A DNA stretch of 64,000 nucleotides from Stylophora pistillata (lineage: Eukaryota), in contig NW_019218629.1 of the NCBI RefSeq assembly GCF_002571385.2, positions 25,733 to 89,732 on the forward strand. Reading direction: 5' to 3'. Both the position numbers and the translations under genes were made by a program. Positions 35,095 to 47,700 of this stretch are shown here, in pieces. Numbering within the stretch: position 1 is the first letter of the stretch; every line of letters begins with the position of its first letter. A model generated the notes under the pieces. It saw nothing but the letters and a program-made list of their open reading frames with translations, had not been told where the DNA came from and did no database searches.

Positions 35095-35409
35095 GAGGAT
35101 CGTGCATCATACGTATCTATAGCCGCAGTTCAAATATATGAACTTCATATATTCATCGTATCTGATTTATCATCACGGGTTTATTACGAATCAACTTAAC
35201 GGCCTGCTCCCTGTTGGCTTGTTAGCTCAATTGGTAGAGCGCTGCGCCTAGTATCGCAGAGGTCAGTGGTTCGAATCCCGTACAGGCCTGATTTTTTTTT
35301 AGGTCTGAATTTGGCTATTGCATAAATAGCGCTCTCTACTGCGAGGATCGTGCATCATACGTATCTATAACCGCAGTTCAAAATATATGAACTTCATATA
35401 TTCATCGTA
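35095..35409 (+). repeat. Solo relative of the 245-bp tRNA-like unit, with about 66-bp terminal direct repeats
   Basis: GAGGATCGTGCATCATACG...TATTCATCGTA at 35095-35160 and 35343-35409 flanks a tRNA-like core at 35216-35289. Confidence 0.85.
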
Positions 35410-35693
35410 CCAAATTATTTATAGTAACAATTTTCTCATGACTAAATCCACTAGTTTGGCTCTAGGATGCCGAAGTTTCGCTAGAAGCCTCTAGCATTCC
35501 AAGCTGCTGTCAGTACAAACTCACAGACCGAAGTAAAAAAGAGTTATTTACCGGTCTAGGTAAAAAAGTGTGCTCTCTCTTTTTATCATGCTTAAAGACA
35601 ACTCCTTAGATTTGCTTGCGGCATCCATAAAAGAGTAAAAATTTGATGCCGATATCGTAATAGCTGTAAGATACAATTCCTTTTTTATGCATC

Positions 35694-35786
35694 CTAGTCA
35701 AACATTTCTTCCTCCTGAAAATCCAATCTTCCTTCTAACAGTTGAAGCTCACTCTTGAAAAATTCTTCCTTGCTTATCTTCTTTTT
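35694..35786 (-). CDS. Predicted terminal exon of the SAMD9-like gene (KKKISKEEFFKSELQLLEGRLDFQEEEMFD*)
   Basis: Strong acceptor ttcctctttttcag, phase 0, completing the motif GEKLDENQ|KKKISKE..SEL. Confidence 0.7.
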   Translation of the reverse strand, partial: KKKISKEEFFKSELQLLEGRLDFQEEEMFD

Positions 35787-38700
35787 CTGAAAAAGAGGAA
35801 ACAAAAGAAAAAAAGAAATAAGAATTCAGCAAAAGCCAACAGAAGGTATCCATTTGAAAAGTAGTTTGCTTTTAAAACATCTTCAAAGAAATGCATACAA
35901 GAAATCTACTATCCCATCAGCCTGACAAACTAGACAGATCTTTTTTTAACGAGTTGCAACTAAAACTGATAAACTTATGCGGTTTCGATGAAATGTAACA
36001 AAATAACCTCCTTCACGGAAAGCAAACTGTTGTGCAAAACCGTTATGAAAACTGAAGATATAAAAGAGATGACCTCTTTAGCTTGGATGTTATGTCTAAT
36101 GAGTGAAATGAAATGAGCCAGCAGGAATCAAACCAAACATTTCTTAAGGAGGCGCGAAAGAGTTTTATGACCGTGCGGAGAATGGATTCCAAGATACACG
36201 CAAGCAAATTACTCGCGAGAGAAATACGCGATGGAGCGCGCGCGATCAGATCAGTGGGCGAGTTGTAAAAAAAACATGGCTGCCACGAGCGTTTCAAAAT
36301 TGCCGGGTACTTCTACTGATTCCAGTGGAAGTGGTTGTTTAAGGAACAAAAATGGAAAGTTTACTTCTTGAAAGCATGTAGGAAAATGTTTGGATGGCAG
36401 GACTCTCACCGAAAGTGGTAAAAAAAAGATTATTTAACAAGCTGAAGGCACAGAAGGCAGCATGGTCGAGTGGTCAGCGTGTCAGACTTCGGCCAGTTGG
36501 GATTCTTAATAATGTTATTTTCAATTTGAAATATTTGTTTCAATTGTTTGGTGGAAAACCTGTAAACTAGCTTCTAGTTAAGTGTTTCTCCACGTTAAAA
36601 ACTGTTTAATACTTTTTACTTATTTATTGGCTAAAGGAGGATGGTGAAGCCGACACCGCATCAGCAAAGTCGCGACGAGTACGCTCGGTAGGTCTTACTT
36701 TGTTCCGCTAAAAAATTTAATTGGTTACCTCTGAGTGCTGCGATTTGTTTGACATTACTTCACATTGATTCCTAATAAAATGAAATTAGCGAGAACTTTC
36801 CTAAACAACTCATTGAAAGATGAAATGATTGTTGGATCCAGAGTTGTAAACACTGACAGTTTTATGAACGGAAATGGAGAAGTATAAATGTTGCCTTAAA
36901 AATACACATAATTTTTAAGTAAACGAGATATCGAAAAAATGTGGATGAGACTTTAATTTTAAGTCAACCAGACAGTAAAATTAAAATAAAATACTAATCT
37001 TAAACTTGTGAGAAAGATTGTTGATATTTCCCTCGATAAACTGTAAATTACAACTTGGAAGAAATTGCAAACTCGCGATCGTTAAGAAAGGATTGCAAAA
37101 TTTGTTGTCTTAGTGGCAAAGAGAGAAAAGGAAAAATGAAGCCAAGGCTTGTTCATAGCTCTAGTTCTTCGAAAATTAGTAATTTGCGAAATATGTGAGC
37201 AACAAATTAGTGATGTATATAAAACCCTGTTTTCCGCTAAGTTTGACGCTCATGACAGTACGGAAGACGTCAATGCAAATTATTTTCACTCCTCCACTTC
37301 AAATTGCACATGAACAATTACATCGGTCAATCATGGTAAATGTGCATCAACAAATGAGGCCTTTAATCAAGCCATCTTGAAACAACGACAAGATACCATC
37401 CAGACGTTGGATGGAAAGCTTCATCTTTCGACAAACATGGTCCAGACGCTGGCACATGCTGGTTTGTTTCATGTTATACCACAGTCTCTGTACGAGAAAC
37501 TCAACATTAACGGGCCTCAATGGAGTAATGGCATTGGCGCCAACTGCAAACTCAACTGGTCACAATAAATCGAATTCCGCAAGAGAATACTCTTACATTT
37601 TTAACAGTCGTAACGGTAAGCAGTCTGAGTCTCAAATGATGACTCATTTTTCAGAAATGTGTAAAATCACAAAACAGTGTGAATCCATCTTCAGGACGAA
37701 CGCTTTTTTGCTCTCTGAGGGCATCCATCGATTAATTGCGTGGACGCGGACTCGTCCTTGTGAAAATGAGCCGTTGAGTCAGAGGTATCGTTTAAAACGC
37801 GTGACCGGATATAAAAGTGTGAGCTAAAATTGTAAAAACCGGAAGTAAAGCTTGCTAAGTGGATGAGCTAATATCTCGAAAATTAGTTCGGTGACCTAAT
37901 CTGGCTTTTTGTGTACAAATAATATTCATCATAGAGAATGTGATGATGTTTAAAAAATTAAAAAAAAAAAAACTAGGTCAACGACTTGGTTTTTTGAGAT
38001 ATCTTTCAAAAACCGAGTTTTAGAGGGTCTTTTAGCACCGTTGTTCTGTTGCCATGGCAACAGACAGAGCCTGGCGAACACTCTTAAGAAATATACTAAA
38101 ATTATTTTATACAGATGTCAAAACATTACCCTGATGATAACTTTGACAGTCCTGATACCTTTTTCATTTGTCGCTTGCCGTTACTAGTGAAAAACCCTTT
38201 CAAGCCTCCTTAACTCAGATTTGCCTGAAGCAGTTACAAACCTCTGTTGCCTAGTTTTGCTTTTGCTTTTTTTTCACGGAAGAGTAAACCCTTTAAAAGA
38301 ATCATGACATAGCATCGAATTACACAATATCGTCGATGTTCTATTTACGTCTTGCTTAAGGCACAGACTTAAGAAGCGGAACCGAAACGATATAAAGAAC
38401 ATGAATTCAGAAAGAAATGAAACAGTATCCTTGAGGATAGTAGAGTGGTACAGAAATTTCGAAGTCAACTAAGATACAACCCTCGAAATTCAAATCAATT
38501 AAAAAATGAACAGTTTTTAATATAAGAGAAAAATCGAGTTTCCAGATGGGATTTCACATAGGTTCACATTTTTTCAACCGTCAAAATTACCCAAAACCGT
38601 CAACTGCTCCAGTCTTATCAATCGGATTGCCGCTGTTCCCCGGTTGGTTTTACCTTGCAACGATCCGATCAACGACAAGATTTTAGTGATTATGACAATC

Positions 38701-41700
38701 ACCTTATAGGCTTGAAATGGCTTCGTGTTTTATCTACTTCCGAGGAGCATTCCCACTTTATGTTCTTGTCGAAGGAAGCTTTTTACTGGTCTTCTCACAT
38801 GAAATTGACACGGGTGCTTCGTTTACAGATGAAATTGCAAATTTTTCTTTCTCGTGCGTTGCTTTTGACATTTTCACGTCTGGTTTGAGTTTTATTATTT
38901 ACAATGTACGTAGAGTTTTTGCATAAGTTGTTTGGTGTGTTATCTGTGAATTACCCGCCTCGGTAACCTGTTATATTGCAAATATTAATTTCTTACGTAC
39001 TTCTGTACTAAAATCAATGAAGAAAAAAATTCAACCAGCCGTGAACGTTTGTCGTCAGTTGATCATACCTGTAATTAGCATTTAACTGTAACCGTTACCT
39101 GTCCAAGCGAAATTCCTTCCTAGCCAATCGTTATTGAAATGTATTAGATAATTCAATGCGTGACGTAATCCTTAAGTTAATTAATATGATTAAATAAAAA
39201 GCAAGTTCTGGCGCATTTTGAGACAACCTTGACTCTTAAGGCAACTCATGAAGACAACCTTGATTTCAAGGTTGTCTTCAAGTCAACCTTGAATTTTCAG
39301 AATGTGTTCTGAGAGAACCTCGATTCGAAGGCAACTCATGAAGACAACCAGTTTTGGCTCATTTTAAAATTTCACAAGTTCGCTGTTACGCCTGAATTTC
39401 ACAACATCATCTGTGAAATTCATGGTTTGCATCAGCATCATTAAGAGTTCACACTTTCAAGCTCTCTGTTGATGATGTTGGACAGAGCATCTGAAAGGAT
39501 GAAGATGTGACATTTCACTTTTCCGGAACGTCATACGTTGCTGCTGATTGCGAGCTGAGCTCCTTCTTTTGTATCCCCTAGTCTCAATCTTTAACGGTGA
39601 AGATTTTCAAATGCTAATATTGTGTCTTCTCACAAAGAAGTCGTGGTGTGCCTTGATTTTTCCTTCTGTCAAAACTTTGTCTTTATAAATGAGAGGAGTA
39701 TGGCAGTCTGAGTTCAGTCCTTCATGAAAATTATCTCCAACTATTTTTGTGAAATTCCCCCACACGAATTGTGCCTGTTGCAGGAGTTGCAGAAAAGTCG
39801 AAAAGCTTCACACCATTGCACCAGAAGAACTTTGGCCATTTCAATGGTCCTCTCTTGTAGATTGTCTGTAAAGCCTTTGAGACCTGAGTAGGATCTTTTG
39901 AAGTGAAAGCTTCAGCATCCTTTAATCTGCTCGCAACATCGACAACTGTCAATACAGACTTAGACACTCCTTCCTCTCGGAAGTGTGTCATGAGGGAGGA
40001 AAAGAAGATCAGCTTGGTGAACTGCATTTAGAGATTCAACATCAAAAGTTGGTATCGGGATTTGTTTCGGGACCGGAAAAGAAATCTGGCACTCCGACTT
40101 CTTAGCTAACTTAAAAATCCTAAACAGCTTCAAAAGGTATATGCTAAAAGTGGCGCACTTAGGAGAATCAGGCGTTTTGTCCCTGACAATGTTATGTTAA
40201 GGCTCTATAAAACTTTCATTCTCCCTCATTTTGAATACTGTTGCCCCCTCTTACTTGGATTGGGGAAAGTGCAAGCGAATCGGCTAGAAGATGCCAACTA
40301 TTATATTCTTAGATCACTGCTAGGTTATCACAAGTCTACCCTTTATGATGAATTGCTGCGAATCTTGAATATGGAAACGTTAGACCAGAGAAGGAAACAA
40401 CAATCCCTTATTCTGTTATATAAATGTTTGCATAACGACGGTCCCAAATACATCAGAGATTTTTTTAGTTTTAGGGAAACTATGTACAACCTGAGAGGAA
40501 CCGGCATTAGTTTGTGCGCACCTAAATTTAATTTAAATTTCATAAAAAAATCTTTCACTTATATGTGTGCGCAGCTGTGGAATGGATTACCAACAGGTGT
40601 AAAACTGGCCAATGATATCAACCTTTTTAAGAAGCTATTGAGAACATTGAAACTTTAGCTGCTTCTCAATTTTATACTTGTATTTAAGTGACTCTCAATT
40701 TCATTGTACAAACTTAATTTTTAATTTTAATTTTAAATTATTTAAGCTATTGCTTCATCATTTTATACCTGTATTTAAGTGACTTTGAATTTTACTGTAC
40801 AAACTTAAATTTTAATATTAATCGTTAGTTATTTTAATTTCTAATCAATTAGGTTTTGACAGTATGTATTAGTTTTTTTAGATTCTTAATCTTAGAGGCA
40901 CGTACGTATTTTGAATGAGCTCTATGAACTCCTTGACGCTACGTGGGTAAATAAAGTATTGATTGATTGATTGATCCTTTCGTGCTATAATTAACTCTTT
41001 AAAGTTTATTTTCCATTTTCTTTTGTATTCACAGAAACGACTGGCCGCCGATCCCAAAGCCAAAGCCATAACTCCATTGTAGATCACTTAACCTTGCTTT
41101 TGTTGTGTGCTCGGCTTGTAGAAGTGTGAAAACTGTGGCTTTCTTAGATCAAGCTCTTCATTATGTGCCTTGATGAAAAGCTTTAAAACATAATCTGTAG
41201 CAACCAAATTCTGTTTTGCCTCCTTTTTGATTCGGTCATTTGCTACAATCCAATCGAGAAGCTTTGTTCGATTTTCTTGATACTTCTCAAAGGCACTAAG
41301 TATTTTTACACAGAGACACCATGTCTCTTCTTGTCCTCTTCAACACTTTTTTCATCTCCACTCATATACTTTGCGAGATAGCTCCAACCAACAAATGCAG
41401 TTACATTGATGAGCGCTCCTCCAATCATTATTGCTACGCTTGCCATTTTATCAATGGTCATCATTATTTTCAAGAATCGCTGACGAGTATTCGTCATAAA
41501 TTTTTTCTTCTACCCATTTGATTTATTAATACATAATGTTCCAGTTCTTACCCAAGTTCTTATTTAAGTTGTTATTAAGTTCTCATTGAAGTTCCTATTC
41601 AAGTGCTTATCATGTCTTGATGAGTACTTATTTAATTTCATCACAAATACTTTATATTTCCTTAACATTGACCGAGGGCGACCTAAAGGGTACTTTAACA

Positions 41701-44700
41701 TTTTTGACAGTGAGAAGAGCAGCTCTTGCGGTTGCCATGTACTTTCCATACTTTAGCCTCAATCCATTTGCAATCATTCCAAGTTCTCTCTTTACCGTAT
41801 AGTTATCGTTAAAGACCCTCAGAATCTTTCTTTCGTCAATAGGGAGAAAATGAGCCAATGCTTTATATGGAAGCTAAAGCAATGTATCAACCATTGCATC
41901 GCAAGTCTTTGAAGACAATGAAGCTTTATATCTCTTGAAGTACTTCTTAACATCTTGTTGACAAGGCTTCTTGACCTAATCCTGGGTGAGAGATACACCA
42001 ATCATTTCCTTCGCTTTACCACTTGCAACGAGAACAGCAAGTTGCTCTCGATGATCCGAATCACTTGTGGGTTCAGCCTCGAGAATGTTCATAACATCTG
42101 TGATTACTTCTTGTTCAGACATATCCATTTTAAATGTAACGTTTCAAAATTTATACTGAATAGATGGCAAAGTGACAATATGAGATGTGAATATTCTGCT
42201 CTCTTTAGCTTTGCTATTAATTCCATCTGCTCACCCTTTATCAAATCACCTGCACAATCATCAGATATAATCTTCATATCTTTAGCCGAAGATGCATAGA
42301 AGAAAACTAAGGCAGCGATGTTTTTGCTGAATGGTTTTGTGATACGTGTCATCTGCTGTGTGAGGACCCAGACGCTGATTCCCCTATATCTTGCGCTGGA
42401 TGCTAAATTCACGAGTTCATTCGTCCTCTGCTTCACATCTCTCGAAGCAATGCAGTCATAGAGGATGATCAGTGTATTGGTTCCCTCGTACATATAACTA
42501 ATAATCTTGAACCAATCATCATCCGTCTTGGATTAGAGTCAAGATAGGTAAGTCCTTATTCGAATCTCCGAAATTTCCCACATCTTATTGTGGATGAACG
42601 TTGGACAAATCAGGATACTATAATCGAATTTCTGAATTCTTTGCTCAAGAGATTGAAAAGGTATCTTGTCTATCCTGAATTTGTAGGTGCATTGAATGGA
42701 TTATTTTTGGGATTCATATTCTATAGAGGCCATGAGCAAAAGTTGATATCTTTCCTTCTCTTCATCAGCACTCAAAGCTATCTTGTGGATGGTCTCAGTG
42801 AATAGTTCATGCTTATGTGACCTGAATACATTCATGTTCCTCACTTTTTATGTTTCTGCTGAATAAGCACTCTCTATTGTCGTCATGATTATATTCTTCT
42901 TAATTACAGTCTTCTTAATCCCTTTACACTTCTTCTCTTCTGTCCCTCAAGTATCTTGCAGCTGTAGAGTTTTGCTCTCAATCCAACAAACTCTTCAATG
43001 ATCTTTCCACCAGCTTCATCTCCCATCACGCCTACAACCTTGTTACAGCCAGTTGAGATTCCTGAAATGTGATCCTTGGTAGAGTTGCTTGTGTCAAACT
43101 TGTGTTTAATATCTTCACTCATATCCTTGTAGAAGTCTTCAGTTTCAGCCTTATACATGACACTGTCAGTGTCTGTGAATAGGAGCTTTACACCATCCCC
43201 ATACATCTCTGGCTTATGAAATTGTATTAATGTTCTTGTTGTGCGTTGTAACGAGACTTTTTTTAACTATTGTGCTATGTGTAGAGTTTGGCTTTGCAGA
43301 AAGCTTTTGTGCTTTCGTTCGGTTGTTGACTAATCTTACATCTACTCTATTCCTGATGTTTTCAATAGTTTTGCCAAAAACAGAGTTGTTCATCAACTTG
43401 AAGAAATCCTTTTCGAATTCATTCTTCGCATTCCTGGACAGGTTTGTGTTAAACTCCATGTGTTTCTTTAGCCAGGGTTCTTCCTGAAAGCTTACTCCTT
43501 CGCGAATCTTTTTTATCCTCAAACCAAGGCTTTCATATAGCTTGAGGTTCTTGTGATGAATGATATACTTCCCCTTATCATTCATAATTGGCATAAACTT
43601 CCTTACCTTATTGATCGTAAGCCTCTCAGGAGCGAGTCGATAATCATTTTGTAAGTTTTGAAGCTCTTTTGGAAAATAAAGATATACTGTCTTCGAAGAT
43701 ACAAGGAATATTACTTCATTTGCCGAGGCCCGTCATCCACTTGAAACCTCCGAAATGAAGAGGCTTACACATTGCCCATCATAGAAAATGTTTGCATCAA
43801 GATAGGTGATGTATTTGGTTTGCCTGCTCGAATCATAGGCTTCACCCATATATTTGTTGTTTGCTTTTCCATAGCAAGTTAATGTCATTGAGATTCCTCC
43901 ACGAATTCCTTTCTTAAAATATCAGCAACATGTTTGGATCACTCAATAGCTTAAGCTCAATGTTTGTCACCTTTTATGCGACATCCCAAGCCAACCCAGG
44001 AGCAGTGTAATACCAGGTAGGGTCGAGATCTTAATTCTCAAAACAGACGTTTCTAACTCTTCGAACACGTTTGCCAGCAGGAGGACGTCTGATTTGATTT
44101 GAGATAAAGGTCATGAGAATCACCTAACGTATTCATTTTGAACTTGTTCCAAACATCCTTTGCGTGCTCATAATCTTCATCGGATGTATCACCGTCATTC
44201 AGCTTTGAAAGAAAACCTCTTTTAGTCGGTAGTTTTGTCGCATCAAATTTAGTGATACTACTCATGTAATCATATGGGTACACACCCTCTCTTGAGACCA
44301 ACTCGATTTTGTCCTTGAGTACTTTCTTAGTTTCCTTCAGCTTATCTTGAATGGAGTTACAAACCAGTTTATCGAGAGAAGAGGTCATAAACTTAGAGCT
44401 GTCAATAAAGCGAAGCTCAATCTTGATATCAACTTCTTTACCTTCTAAGTTGATGTAAGAGCCAACAACGACGTCTTTGCAGAAGCTGATTTAGCTCTCA
44501 TTAGTGGGAATGCATTTGATGTTTTATTCAGTCTTGCCAAGATTCTAAACAAATAGATGATAGTCGTAAGCCAAGTTGTGAAAGATGATAGGAGTGAACT
44601 TCAGCTTCTTGAATTGTAGGTTGCATATGTAGTGCACTGCTCCACGATACTTTCCTGTAAAATGGCAGTGGTCTTTCACTTTGTCAAAGGCGCTCTCAAA

Positions 44701-47700
44701 AATTTCTCACGGTATCCAACAGTGTTTTGCTGCAGTTATCATTTGCATATCGCTGTTGGTGAAGATCATCTCCTGCAAAGTAGAATTTCTTATGAATCTT
44801 TTTCATATTCTGTTTGAGAACTTCAACAAAGATCTGGCAATTTCTTCATCTTCACCTCTTGCTCTGTAGATGACTGTCTCTTAAGAATAAGGCCTAACCT
44901 CTAAGCTGACAGCCTTATAGTCGAAACCACATGGTTTATATTTTTGATATTGATTGGTGAAGTTCTCATCGCTCCTCGACTCACTGGTGTCAAACAGTTC
45001 TGTGAGTGATTCAAAGTAGGCATAAACAACAAAGGGCATTCTTACTGAACGGTTGTGGTATTTTGCTGGCATCTCGATCTTGACTGCCTCATTGTTTGCA
45101 CAATACTCTTCATGGACTGCAAGCTTTCATTTGACTGTTCTATCCTCATTTTCTCTAACCATCTCACATAAGAGAATCATCTTGATTTAGTCTAGCGATT
45201 TTCTCTCATGATTCTCAAGACTTAAGGTTTTGCTTTCTGCATGAAATCTTTTGATCCAAAACCTTCAATTCTAAATTGCCTCGCGAAACCTCTCAACGCG
45301 CTTGCTGACTCTTGAATTGTAAACTGATGACTTTTGTAGTATTCAACGAACTTATTTCATTCACCTCTCGTATCTTAAGTGGTTTTTTCTGAATCCAAGC
45401 ATCTTTTGAATTTCCCTTATTTCTCTCCTCCTCCTTTGTTCAGATTCATCAACCTGCAGTCTGACATATCTTGTTGGTCTGAGAACTGGAGCATTAATGT
45501 CAGGAAACGAGCGGTCAATAATATTAGATAACAACTCAATCAACTTCTGCTTTCTGAGTCTTGAATATTTTTTTTAAGTCCGAGCCGTTTTACATCAGCT
45601 CATAATTCTTGAACATTTTTCTTCTCCATTTTTTTTATTGTATAAAAAAAATTAACATACTATTAAAATGGAAGACAAGAATTTAATTCCAATACGTTCA
45701 AACAAATTCAGGGAAATTTCCAAACAAAACGCTAAGTTCCAGCGACAGCGAGAAAAATCACGATACAAAGTAAAGTCGGATTGATTTCAGCTAGACTGAT
45801 CTCAGCCTACTTGATTCATCGCCTCTTATTTTGAAATTGTTCAACCATAAATATTGCAACGCCTATAATCAGAGGCCATGCATTTTGACCGAAGAAGCTG
45901 ATCACTGATTCAGCAGCTCTGAAAACGAAGCCGACTATGGAGCCAATGAGGTGTGGAAGAATTCCAGCCATCTTTTCTCCGAGAGTCTTAAGCCCGTTCC
46001 CTACTCCTTTAGCAAAAGACTTCGAGCCTTTTGTCAATGTGCTCACAATCACTCCAATCCTTGTTCCAACTGTCAAGACAACAGCTGAGACTGTTAAGCC
46101 ATAGTTCTTGAAGATGTTTCTCACTCTCTCACGGAGTGATAATCTTTCTTCGAGTCTCTCTCTCTCCTTGTCAAGAGCATCAATTCTCTCTGGATCTTCT
46201 ATCATCCTTTCTCTTTGCTATTATCCTTTCTCTTTGAAGTAGAGTTTACATTCTTATCATCAACAATCCCCCGATCATCTTAATTGAACTTCTGCAGCTC
46301 CTCAATTTCTTTAGACTTCTGAGGAGTCAAAATCTATTGCTACTTTTACGGTGGAGATAGATTCGGTATTTTCATTGATCTTAAAAGTAAGAGGGACGAT
46401 GACCTCACGGTTCAGGATTGAGATTGGTGGATACGCAAGAGGGAGTTCAGCTCGCAATTAACAGGAAAGCATCGGGTTCAGAAAATGTGAAACTTCACAT
46501 CTTAATGCTATCAGACGCTCAGCTCAACATCGTCAAGAGAGAGCTTGAGAGTGTGAGCTATTTACGATGCCGATCCAAACAATGAATGACGACAATTCAG
46601 GCACGACAGCGAACTTTTGAAATTTCAAAATGAGCCAGAACTGGTTGTCTTTTTGAGTTGCCTTTAAATCAAGGCTGTCTCAGAACTCATTTTGAAAAAT
46701 CAAGGTTGAGTTGGGTTTTCCCCCTGTTCGTCATGTGATTTGTGAGACAAGAAACCTGTGTTTACACCAGTAACGAGAAATACCTTCAATCCCAACTGAC
46801 ACTGACTATTTAGTAAAACTGTAAGTTTAACTTGTTACCTGATTTTCATCCAGTTTTTCTCCTTGCTTTCCCTGCTCTTTTAAAGACTGAATCTCCTTGA
46901 TTTTTCTCCTTAACTTTCCCAGCTTAGAAGTGTATTTGTCATATGTCATGAATTTCTTGGCTGAAGGATATTGAGTTTGATGAGCAGAGACCAGATTGTT
47001 TAATACCATAGATCTTTGGACGTATTCACGACTGGTATATTTAACGTCCAGGGCAATAGGCTGGTGCCAACTGAATCCTAGGTAGAATAATACTTCTTCC
47101 TTTGAAAATCCTCCCTCACGATCAGAATAGTAAACATCGATACTTTCACTGAGTTCTAGAGGATTCTTCACCCTAATCACATTTTTACCAGCAACCACTC
47201 CTGTAAGACGTTTGAGTCTATCTCTCGTTTCAGAATGTTCAAAGTCCACAGATCCACGAGACGTTTTCAATTCATTTATATGAACAAAAACATCTAACCC
47301 TGAGCCTTTTCCCAAGTAGAAAAGTGTAGTATACTGTCTAGTCAGTTTCTTGAAAGGCATGTGCTTGTACATGTTTTGCTTAAGCATTTTATCGCCGTCT
47401 GTTTCACCTTTCCCCCTCTCTGCCCACCTGGTTTTGAGTTTTGTCAATGCTTCATTGAAGTCTTTCACGCGATAGTTAGTTAGCTCCAACTTCTTTCGTG
47501 GCCAAAGGAACATTACTTTAAGCAAATGTGCATACAGCCTCTTAAATCTTTCATCCTGTTGTTCCAGTGCAACCAGCGAGTCCACAAATCTGTAGATTTC
47601 TCTGTATTCCTCTTCGACCAGCTCAGCTTTTTTGGATTTTGAGGTACTGCTGTATGGAGAATGAAGAGCCATGCTTGTTGCGATATACAGAAGTAGGTCT

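Follow-up and report, generated by a model that had tools for sequence, protein, structure and literature searches.

A window of 64,000 nucleotides from the coral Stylophora pistillata (contig NW_019218629.1, positions 25,733 to 89,732; coordinates below count from its first letter) is animal DNA of ~40% GC that carries a SAMD9-like gene on its minus strand. The gene encodes a coral SAMD9-like STAND nucleoside triphosphatase (NTPase), and in its mRNA the large exon ends at 46839 and is joined to a coding mini-exon of 93 nt (35786-35694). As judged from profile comparisons, the splice completes a module of ~60 residues and two predicted helices that is related to the very C-terminal ends of eIF2A and PYM. 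The best explanation of the whole, to which an even chance may be given, is that a spliced tail related to these two factors forms a putative 40S or RNA anchor, and that the copy of the gene in the window has recently been broken. The SAMD9/SAMD9L family matters for antiviral defence and human disease, and the tail may bear on how its members find their tRNA substrate and on what their C-terminal region senses. The features concerned, all on the minus strand, are as follows.

50617-52716, minus: first part of the large exon, with two SAM domains and an AlbA_2 domain of the SAMD9 tRNA-nuclease type; TGA at 50619-50617
50624-50631, minus: run of eight A (A8) with a frame break, +1 relative to upstream; seven A would be in frame
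46839-50624, minus: rest of the large exon, in a second frame, with the SIR2-like/NOD core, TPR region, OB domain, linker and first tail helix
46839-46943, minus: first helix of the eIF2A/PYM-type module (YDKYTS...GEKLDENQ), ending at the donor
35787-46838, minus: last intron, 11,052 nt, GT...AG, phase 0, containing no N
35694-35786, minus: last exon, coding, 93 nt, 30 codons (KKKISKEE...EEEMFD) and TAG; second helix and acidic end
35380-35693, minus: probable 3' untranslated region; the end is approximate and assumes that the contigs stay colinear

Splicing of the last exon

The long open reading frame (ORF) ends in ...EKLDENQ, which is followed by gtaaca, with the last exon base at 46839, the GT at 46838-46837 and a read-through stop three codons past the donor, at 46829-46827. 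At the other end of the intron a 27-nt pyrimidine-rich tract is followed by cag, the AG lying at 35788-35787. For the splice test, public sequencing runs were aligned to 46300-52200 of the window. In the RNA-type contigs of X1, X2 and X3, which come from three studies, the match stops exactly at 46839 in each case, the 30-letter loose ends are the exact reverse complement of 35786-35757, and the contigs carry 402-407 letters past the junction. It is on the ends of these matches, together with the identity of the loose ends, that the assignment of splicing from 46839 to 35786 across the 11,052-nt intron is based. On the intron side of the donor (46300-46693) no depth was found in X2 or X3, and X1 gave a single contig of 244 nt with a depth of 3, compared with 25.8 in the exon. 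In an index search eleven runs contained a fraction of 0.83 of the words of 46500-48500, a value equal to that of the exonic part of this segment. No reads of a further, raw-read RNA run (X23) fell on the gene, an outcome that carries no weight either way. Transcripts that continue to the stop at 46827 are a minor form at most.

The original prediction, made from the letters of the DNA alone, had set the donor after ...NQ at 46839/46838, and this is exactly where the RNA-type contigs of X1, X2 and X3 break; rather than reading through to 46827 or using some other exon, the contigs of the three studies join 35786. The phase-0 acceptor that it proposed was also found, although the coordinate given for it, 35787, is the G of the AG and the exon starts at 35786. 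When the whole window was scanned in six frames with a profile of the tail (described below), the piece 35825-35697 scored 15.7 bits and the next non-gene piece 5.9 bits, and 35825-35697 was the sole candidate for a last exon within the window. Neither AATAAA nor ATTAAA was found in the 3' region past the coding part of the last exon.

The SAMD9-like protein and the attachment point of the tail

The proteins closest to the product of this gene are SAMD9-like proteins of stony corals (Orbicella, Desmophyllum and Acropora), at 48-68% identity. The ORF at 52716-50617 gives Pfam matches to SAM_1 and SAM_2 (residues 23-60 and 111-150), and a match to SLFN_AlbA_2 that at 19.7 bits is below the cut-off; residues 470-696 of the same ORF match the SAMD9 AlbA_2 structure 7ksp with an E value of 8.9e-21. 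The second ORF (50624-46827) has no match in Pfam, and its residues 25-796 match SAMD9 270-1020, the SIR2-like and P-loop NOD core, with an E value of 1.3e-56. Further towards the C-terminus the assignment was made by profile search of the PDB, with the domain architecture of SAMD9 taken from the literature (PMC13600222). Positions 6-607 of a coral family profile align to the TPR region of SAMD9. Positions 737-863 align to the OB domain, which makes up the final ~136 residues of SAMD9 156-1589 chains (E about 1e-8), and this alignment stops two residues short of the end of the SAMD9 chain. For the C-terminal 300 residues of a natural homologue, AlphaFold2 (AF2) gave a model with a mean pLDDT (predicted local distance difference test) of 45, too poor to show the OB domain or its packing.

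The coral proteins therefore share with human SAMD9 and SAMD9L, by significant alignment throughout, the SAM domain, the AlbA_2 effector, the SIR2-like/NOD core and the TPR-OB region, and differ from them in having two SAM domains, in carrying the second half of an additional module on a separate exon and, for the copy in the window, in being frame-broken. Human SAMD9 stops at ...FYLGFS...YDIE, whereas the coral proteins continue with a linker of ~35 residues and the eIF2A/PYM-type module, the extension being attached, on these alignments, behind the OB domain just where the human protein stops. The placing of the tail after the OB fold in the original prediction is borne out by the end of the OB alignment at the SAMD9 C-terminus, beyond which the coral proteins run on. 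Human SAMD9 has no such tail, in that no SAMD9 chain was matched when the tail profile was compared with the PDB, which contains the solved SAMD9 156-1589 chains.

Relationship of the tail to eIF2A and PYM

The two exons of the window were always searched separately, and spliced transcripts of homologues (L001-L004) stood in for the joined form; a profile (A1) was built from the four natural contiguous tails of these transcript contigs. Amongst 177,635 distinct PDB sequences the top match of A1 was eIF2A (8dys), residues 553-600 of 603, with an E value of 2.7e-4 in an alignment ungapped over 48 positions, the next match having an E value of 0.06. A 13-sequence profile of the whole coral C-terminal region again retrieved eIF2A from the PDB (E 4.2e-4). 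When the coral genome was searched in six frames, the tail profile ranked the SAMD9-like copies first; below them came genes on contigs C442 (E 4e-4) and C162 and, in a 179-aa frame that also contains a Mago-bind match, the PYM C-terminus. The PYM protein of this coral is 99% identical to the one known from Stylophora pistillata. Conversely, with a profile made from the C-terminal 62 residues of more than 100 PYM proteins, the natural tails scored 18-33 bits over both helices, compared with at most 11.5 bits in 3,500 composition-preserving shuffles, and within 107 whole SAMD9-like proteins this profile matched only the C-terminal end. The two exon pieces of the window align to colinear halves of both profiles: the first-helix piece (46839-46943) scored 49 bits against the coral tail profile (positions 3-42) and 15 bits against the PYM C-terminal profile (positions 8-40), and the last exon (35694-35786) 14-15.7 bits against positions 42-75 of the tail profile. 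AF2 models of the four natural tails contain helices at 8-33 and 40-74 with a mean pLDDT of 85, and two alpha helices have been reported for the C domain of eIF2A (PMC6208778).

These matches uphold the proposal of the original prediction that the joined tail follows the pattern of the eIF2A and PYM C-termini and, with eIF2A at the head of the PDB matches and the tails scoring above their shuffles with the PYM profile, the tail is more than a generic coiled coil. Caprin had been named as a further candidate relative, and no Caprin chain was present amongst the PDB matches of the tail profile to an E value of 10, where the solved constructs may omit the relevant segment. Pfam searches with the four tails gave scattered, weak and mutually inconsistent matches, there being no Pfam model for the module, and a search of the ESM Atlas with a natural tail gave no usable match.

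The likeness to eIF2A (human residues ~550-585) comprises the shared pattern KKL.xIxxLKxxxxxGxxLxxNQxxKIxKE...L, the location at the end of the protein and the two predicted helices. eIF2A carries the module behind a nine-bladed beta-propeller and ends in ...ELELGS/I, whereas in all the spliced SAMD9-like tails the eIF2A/PYM motif ends 12-14 residues before the stop and the protein extends to a conserved acidic ...LEEEIFD. In PYM, whose N-terminus is Mago-binding (it is a partner of Y14 and Mago), both helices of the module align and there is a two-residue loop insertion.

The position of the intron provides a second line of comparison. The eIF2A gene of the coral (contig C404, locus L015) has its tail exons ~3 kb downstream of the propeller exons; a 66-nt exon encodes KLRQIEDLKEQQKSGKTLEKNQ and ends ...AATCAG|gt, and the terminal exon reads cag|LDKVAAEASLIKEIQELELGS-stop. 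The intron is in phase 0 and lies directly after NQ, as it does in the SAMD9-like genes (...AATCAG|gtaaca), although the first helix has its own 66-nt exon in eIF2A and is fused to the big exon in the SAMD9-like genes. The C162 gene (L013, G000:C162:164120-164206, plus strand) is split at the same point, after ...TTQ, and has a terminal exon encoding LDKIAKEQEILDELREIESLLTGS. The C442 gene (L012, G000:C442:142210-142353, minus strand) ends in the module unsplit, and the PYM gene of S. pistillata is likewise unsplit at this site. Neither the C442 nor the C162 gene was identified by Pfam. That the intron sits at a shared position speaks for descent of the two-exon module from a common source rather than for convergence. 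The eIF2A/PYM C-terminal motif would then be a mobile two-exon module, found in at least five kinds of gene in this coral. A second locus matching the Pfam model of the eIF2A propeller (G000:C72:190637-192443) had no tail-like exon within 9.9 kb downstream; we take it to be probably eIF3B, which shares that domain.

The split tail in coral paralogues

Coral SAMD9-like paralogues form a large family in which the split tail is conserved. Spliced models or transcript contigs are the source of seven of the 107 related SAMD9-like proteins examined (P0007, P0009, P0021, P0022, P0040, P0053 and P0095), and all seven have tails that read ...NQ followed by EKKISKEE...LEEEIFD. A further 94 are unspliced ORF calls that run through the same donor as NQ-V..., which means for annotation that ORF-based calls of coral SAMD9-like genes almost always miss the last exon (94/101). 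Searching the S. pistillata genome with the tail profile revealed paralogues with open frames of 1,993 aa on contig C972 and 2,244 aa on contig C3, whose own terminal exons lie ~0.26 kb and 2.6 kb downstream, respectively, across matching introns, and a fragment on contig C462.

The tails terminate in ...[ED]3-[IM]-[FY]-[DN]-COOH, which is conserved across paralogues; the end of the window exon (35694-35714) and those of P0007, P0009, P0021, P0022, P0040 and P0053 all consist of acidic residues, a hydrophobic residue, F/Y and D/N (LEEEIFD, EEEMFD). We take these ends to recall the end of the ribosomal P-stalk (...GFGLFD) and TPR ligands of the EEVD type, a likeness that is too short for statistics.

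Proteins with the tail are already present in NCBI models from Orbicella, Desmophyllum and Acropora. The tail is not mentioned in an analysis of SAMD9 domains (PMC5445408) or in a cross-kingdom study from 2025 (PMC12680541), and literature searches on SAMD9 with eIF2A or with coral found no paper naming it. The original prediction's view of the architecture as one not yet described thus holds as far as papers naming the tail are concerned and fails for the sequence databases, in which the coral models stand.

Frame break in the window copy

Homologues of the gene read ...LLCGNKKVLDSSVYPILVL in one frame (LLCGNKK-VLDSS). In the window, one frame gives ...LLCGNKKNG-stop and the +1 frame gives ...KKMVDSSLYPILVL, the two meeting in the A8 run, and a tblastn alignment of P0001 changes frame within 50626-50654. 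The RNA-type contigs of X1 and X2 cross the A8 run with 0 gaps and 0 differences, and the extra A is therefore not an assembly slip. As the AlbA_2 ORF (52716-50617) is out of frame with the sequence downstream of it, standard decoding at this locus cannot yield a protein with both nuclease and tail; it gives a SAM-SAM-AlbA_2 protein without NTPase and tail, and a tail-bearing product is unlikely to be translated. The delivery of the AlbA_2 nuclease by the tail of this same gene, as originally envisaged, does not take place by normal decoding, since one extra A breaks the frame in both DNA and RNA. A single uninterrupted frame from the effector to the C-terminus is found in the C972 and C3 paralogues and not in the window copy, and when the assembly was searched for another version of the frameshift region, whether an intact copy or a haplotig, the window was the sole match. 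The window locus is most likely a recently broken paralogue that is still transcribed and spliced.

Frame breaks at other places were also seen in transcript contigs from other corals, in L001:1440-1560 (P0009) and L004:1440-1640 (P0021), one of them beside a run of T. Either broken expressed paralogues are common in the family, or these are assembly errors.

Possible roles of the tail

Human SAMD9 cleaves the anticodon of tRNA-Phe and arrests translation (PMC10246899; PMC13600222), and its TPR-OB end has a regulatory role (PMC13600222). The corals provide a natural experiment, a SAMD9-like family furnished with a module that has known relatives only on two proteins associated with translation. 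One of these, PYM, is reported to reach the 40S subunit by means of the module, and the tail may be what sets where the nuclease acts. The eIF2A-like C-terminus of human PYM associates with 40S/48S (PMC4072592), and the C domain of eIF2A has been mapped as binding RNA of the hepatitis C virus internal ribosome entry site (PMC6208778). By analogy with these proteins it can be proposed, with moderate confidence, that in intact members of the family the module would anchor the protein to RNA or to the 40S subunit. Such an anchor would keep the sensor and tRNA nuclease near translating messenger ribonucleoproteins or ribosomes, and the cleavage of tRNA and the ensuing arrest of translation could thereby be local and fast.

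A number of observations weigh against the explanation favoured here, that of a spliced, related tail acting as an anchor in a family of which this copy is broken. Drosophila PYM was found without ribosome association (PMC4072592), and binding to 40S is consequently not a proven property of the module. The conserved acidic end of the SAMD9-like tails (...LEEEIFD) is absent from eIF2A and PYM, and because it is specific to the SAMD9-like tails a different or additional partner may exist. The last exon in the window is the most divergent seen, with a three-residue gap and 14-16 bits compared with 33-39 in the paralogues. Finally, the RNA contigs match the assembly over 5 kb with 100% identity; such contigs may stem from the same clonal colony, and the frameshift could therefore be private to one colony.

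A stronger form of the proposal is that corals have fused the 40S- or RNA-binding end of eIF2A/PYM to SAMD9-type tRNA nucleases which, seated on small ribosomal subunits or translating messenger ribonucleoproteins, would cut tRNA at the decoding site. This must be regarded as rather improbable; if it were true, the fusion would imply that SAMD9-family immunity generally acts close to the ribosome, a trait not recognised until now.

Some vertebrate viruses exploit PYM and eIF2A, and a quite different role for the tail would be that of an integrated bait, in which a copy of the eIF2A/PYM C-terminus is displayed on a STAND protein and pathogen factors that grab this surface trigger the sensor. 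The module is clearly related to two host translation factors, the coral family is large and diversified (107 clusters at 48-68% identity), as would be expected of pathogen-driven genes, and STAND proteins use their C-terminal regions for regulation or sensing (PMC13600222). A parallel, by functional analogy only, would be the integrated decoy domains of plant NLRs, where a module resembling a host target sits on the end of a STAND immune protein. However, coral pathogens are not known to possess a factor binding eIF2A or PYM, the tail is conserved about as well as the rest of the protein (53-59% compared with 55-68%) rather than being hypervariable, and it has a conserved acidic end of its own that the supposed originals do not have. 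A bait is rated unlikely, to much the same degree as fusion for cutting at the decoding site.

TPR domains often bind acidic C-terminal peptides, and the last residues of the tail are conserved across paralogues. The hairpin and the acidic ...EEEIFD-COOH might therefore form an internal latch or oligomerisation handle, packing on the protein's own TPR/OB region or on a neighbouring protomer, in which case the tail would adjust autoinhibition or assembly without any function at the ribosome. The autoinhibited state of human SAMD9 is closed by its TPR-OB region, which folds back, and contacts between OB and SIR2 drive assembly (PMC13600222). Such a latch, for which the chance also seems small, about that of a bait, leaves both the specific match to eIF2A/PYM and the position of the intron unexplained, and the AF2 model of the last 300 residues (pLDDT 45) is of too low a quality to reveal packing.

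In the favoured explanation the window copy no longer makes the full protein, but the break at A8 might be bypassed, either by slippage of the polymerase or ribosome or by reinitiation at an ATG overlapping the stop, to give a full-length or two-part product. The break does sit in a homopolymer, an ATG in good context (AAAATGG) overlaps the stop of ORF 52716-50617, 1,262 codons are still open downstream, and the RNA is abundant and correctly spliced. Bypass by slippage would nevertheless need a +1 shift rather than the common -1, homologues are without such a break, the contigs show A8 only, and a downstream frame that remains open is expected of a recent mutation too; bypass is considered distinctly unlikely, and less probable than either a bait or a latch.

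Least probable by far is that the tail resembles eIF2A and PYM no more than any charged coiled coil would, with an incidental splice to the last exon: the region is short, lysine- and glutamate-rich and helical, no Pfam model exists for it and single tails give scattered weak matches, but this reading was rejected on the top PDB match to the very C-terminus of eIF2A, the shuffles (at most 11.5 compared with 18-33 bits), the window-wide exon scan, the match of the exons to colinear halves of the profiles, the intron position shared with eIF2A and the retention of the last exon in seven spliced homologues and two paralogues.

Other features of the window

Within the 11-kb intron, short ORFs on the minus strand at 42104-43594 have weak, sub-threshold Pfam matches to the packaging ATPase Pox_A32 (E 0.004) and the protein-primed polymerase DNA_pol_B_2 (E 0.002). 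From these matches the ORFs look like decayed remnants of a Polinton/Maverick- or adintovirus-like insertion, and it may be because of this insertion that the intron is 11 kb long compared with 0.26-2.6 kb in the paralogues.

Upstream of the large exon, an ORF piece at 54247-54480 on the minus strand resembles part of a ubiquitin-like domain (...VKAEIMERTGLPVKSQALYFNGKKV...). A contig of X2 reaches 1,641 nt beyond 52200, from which it follows that upstream exons exist in the mRNA. Two sea-star SAMD9-like models, P0106 and P0107, carry a Pfam ubiquitin domain, and a ubiquitin-like cap is therefore not unique to the window gene.

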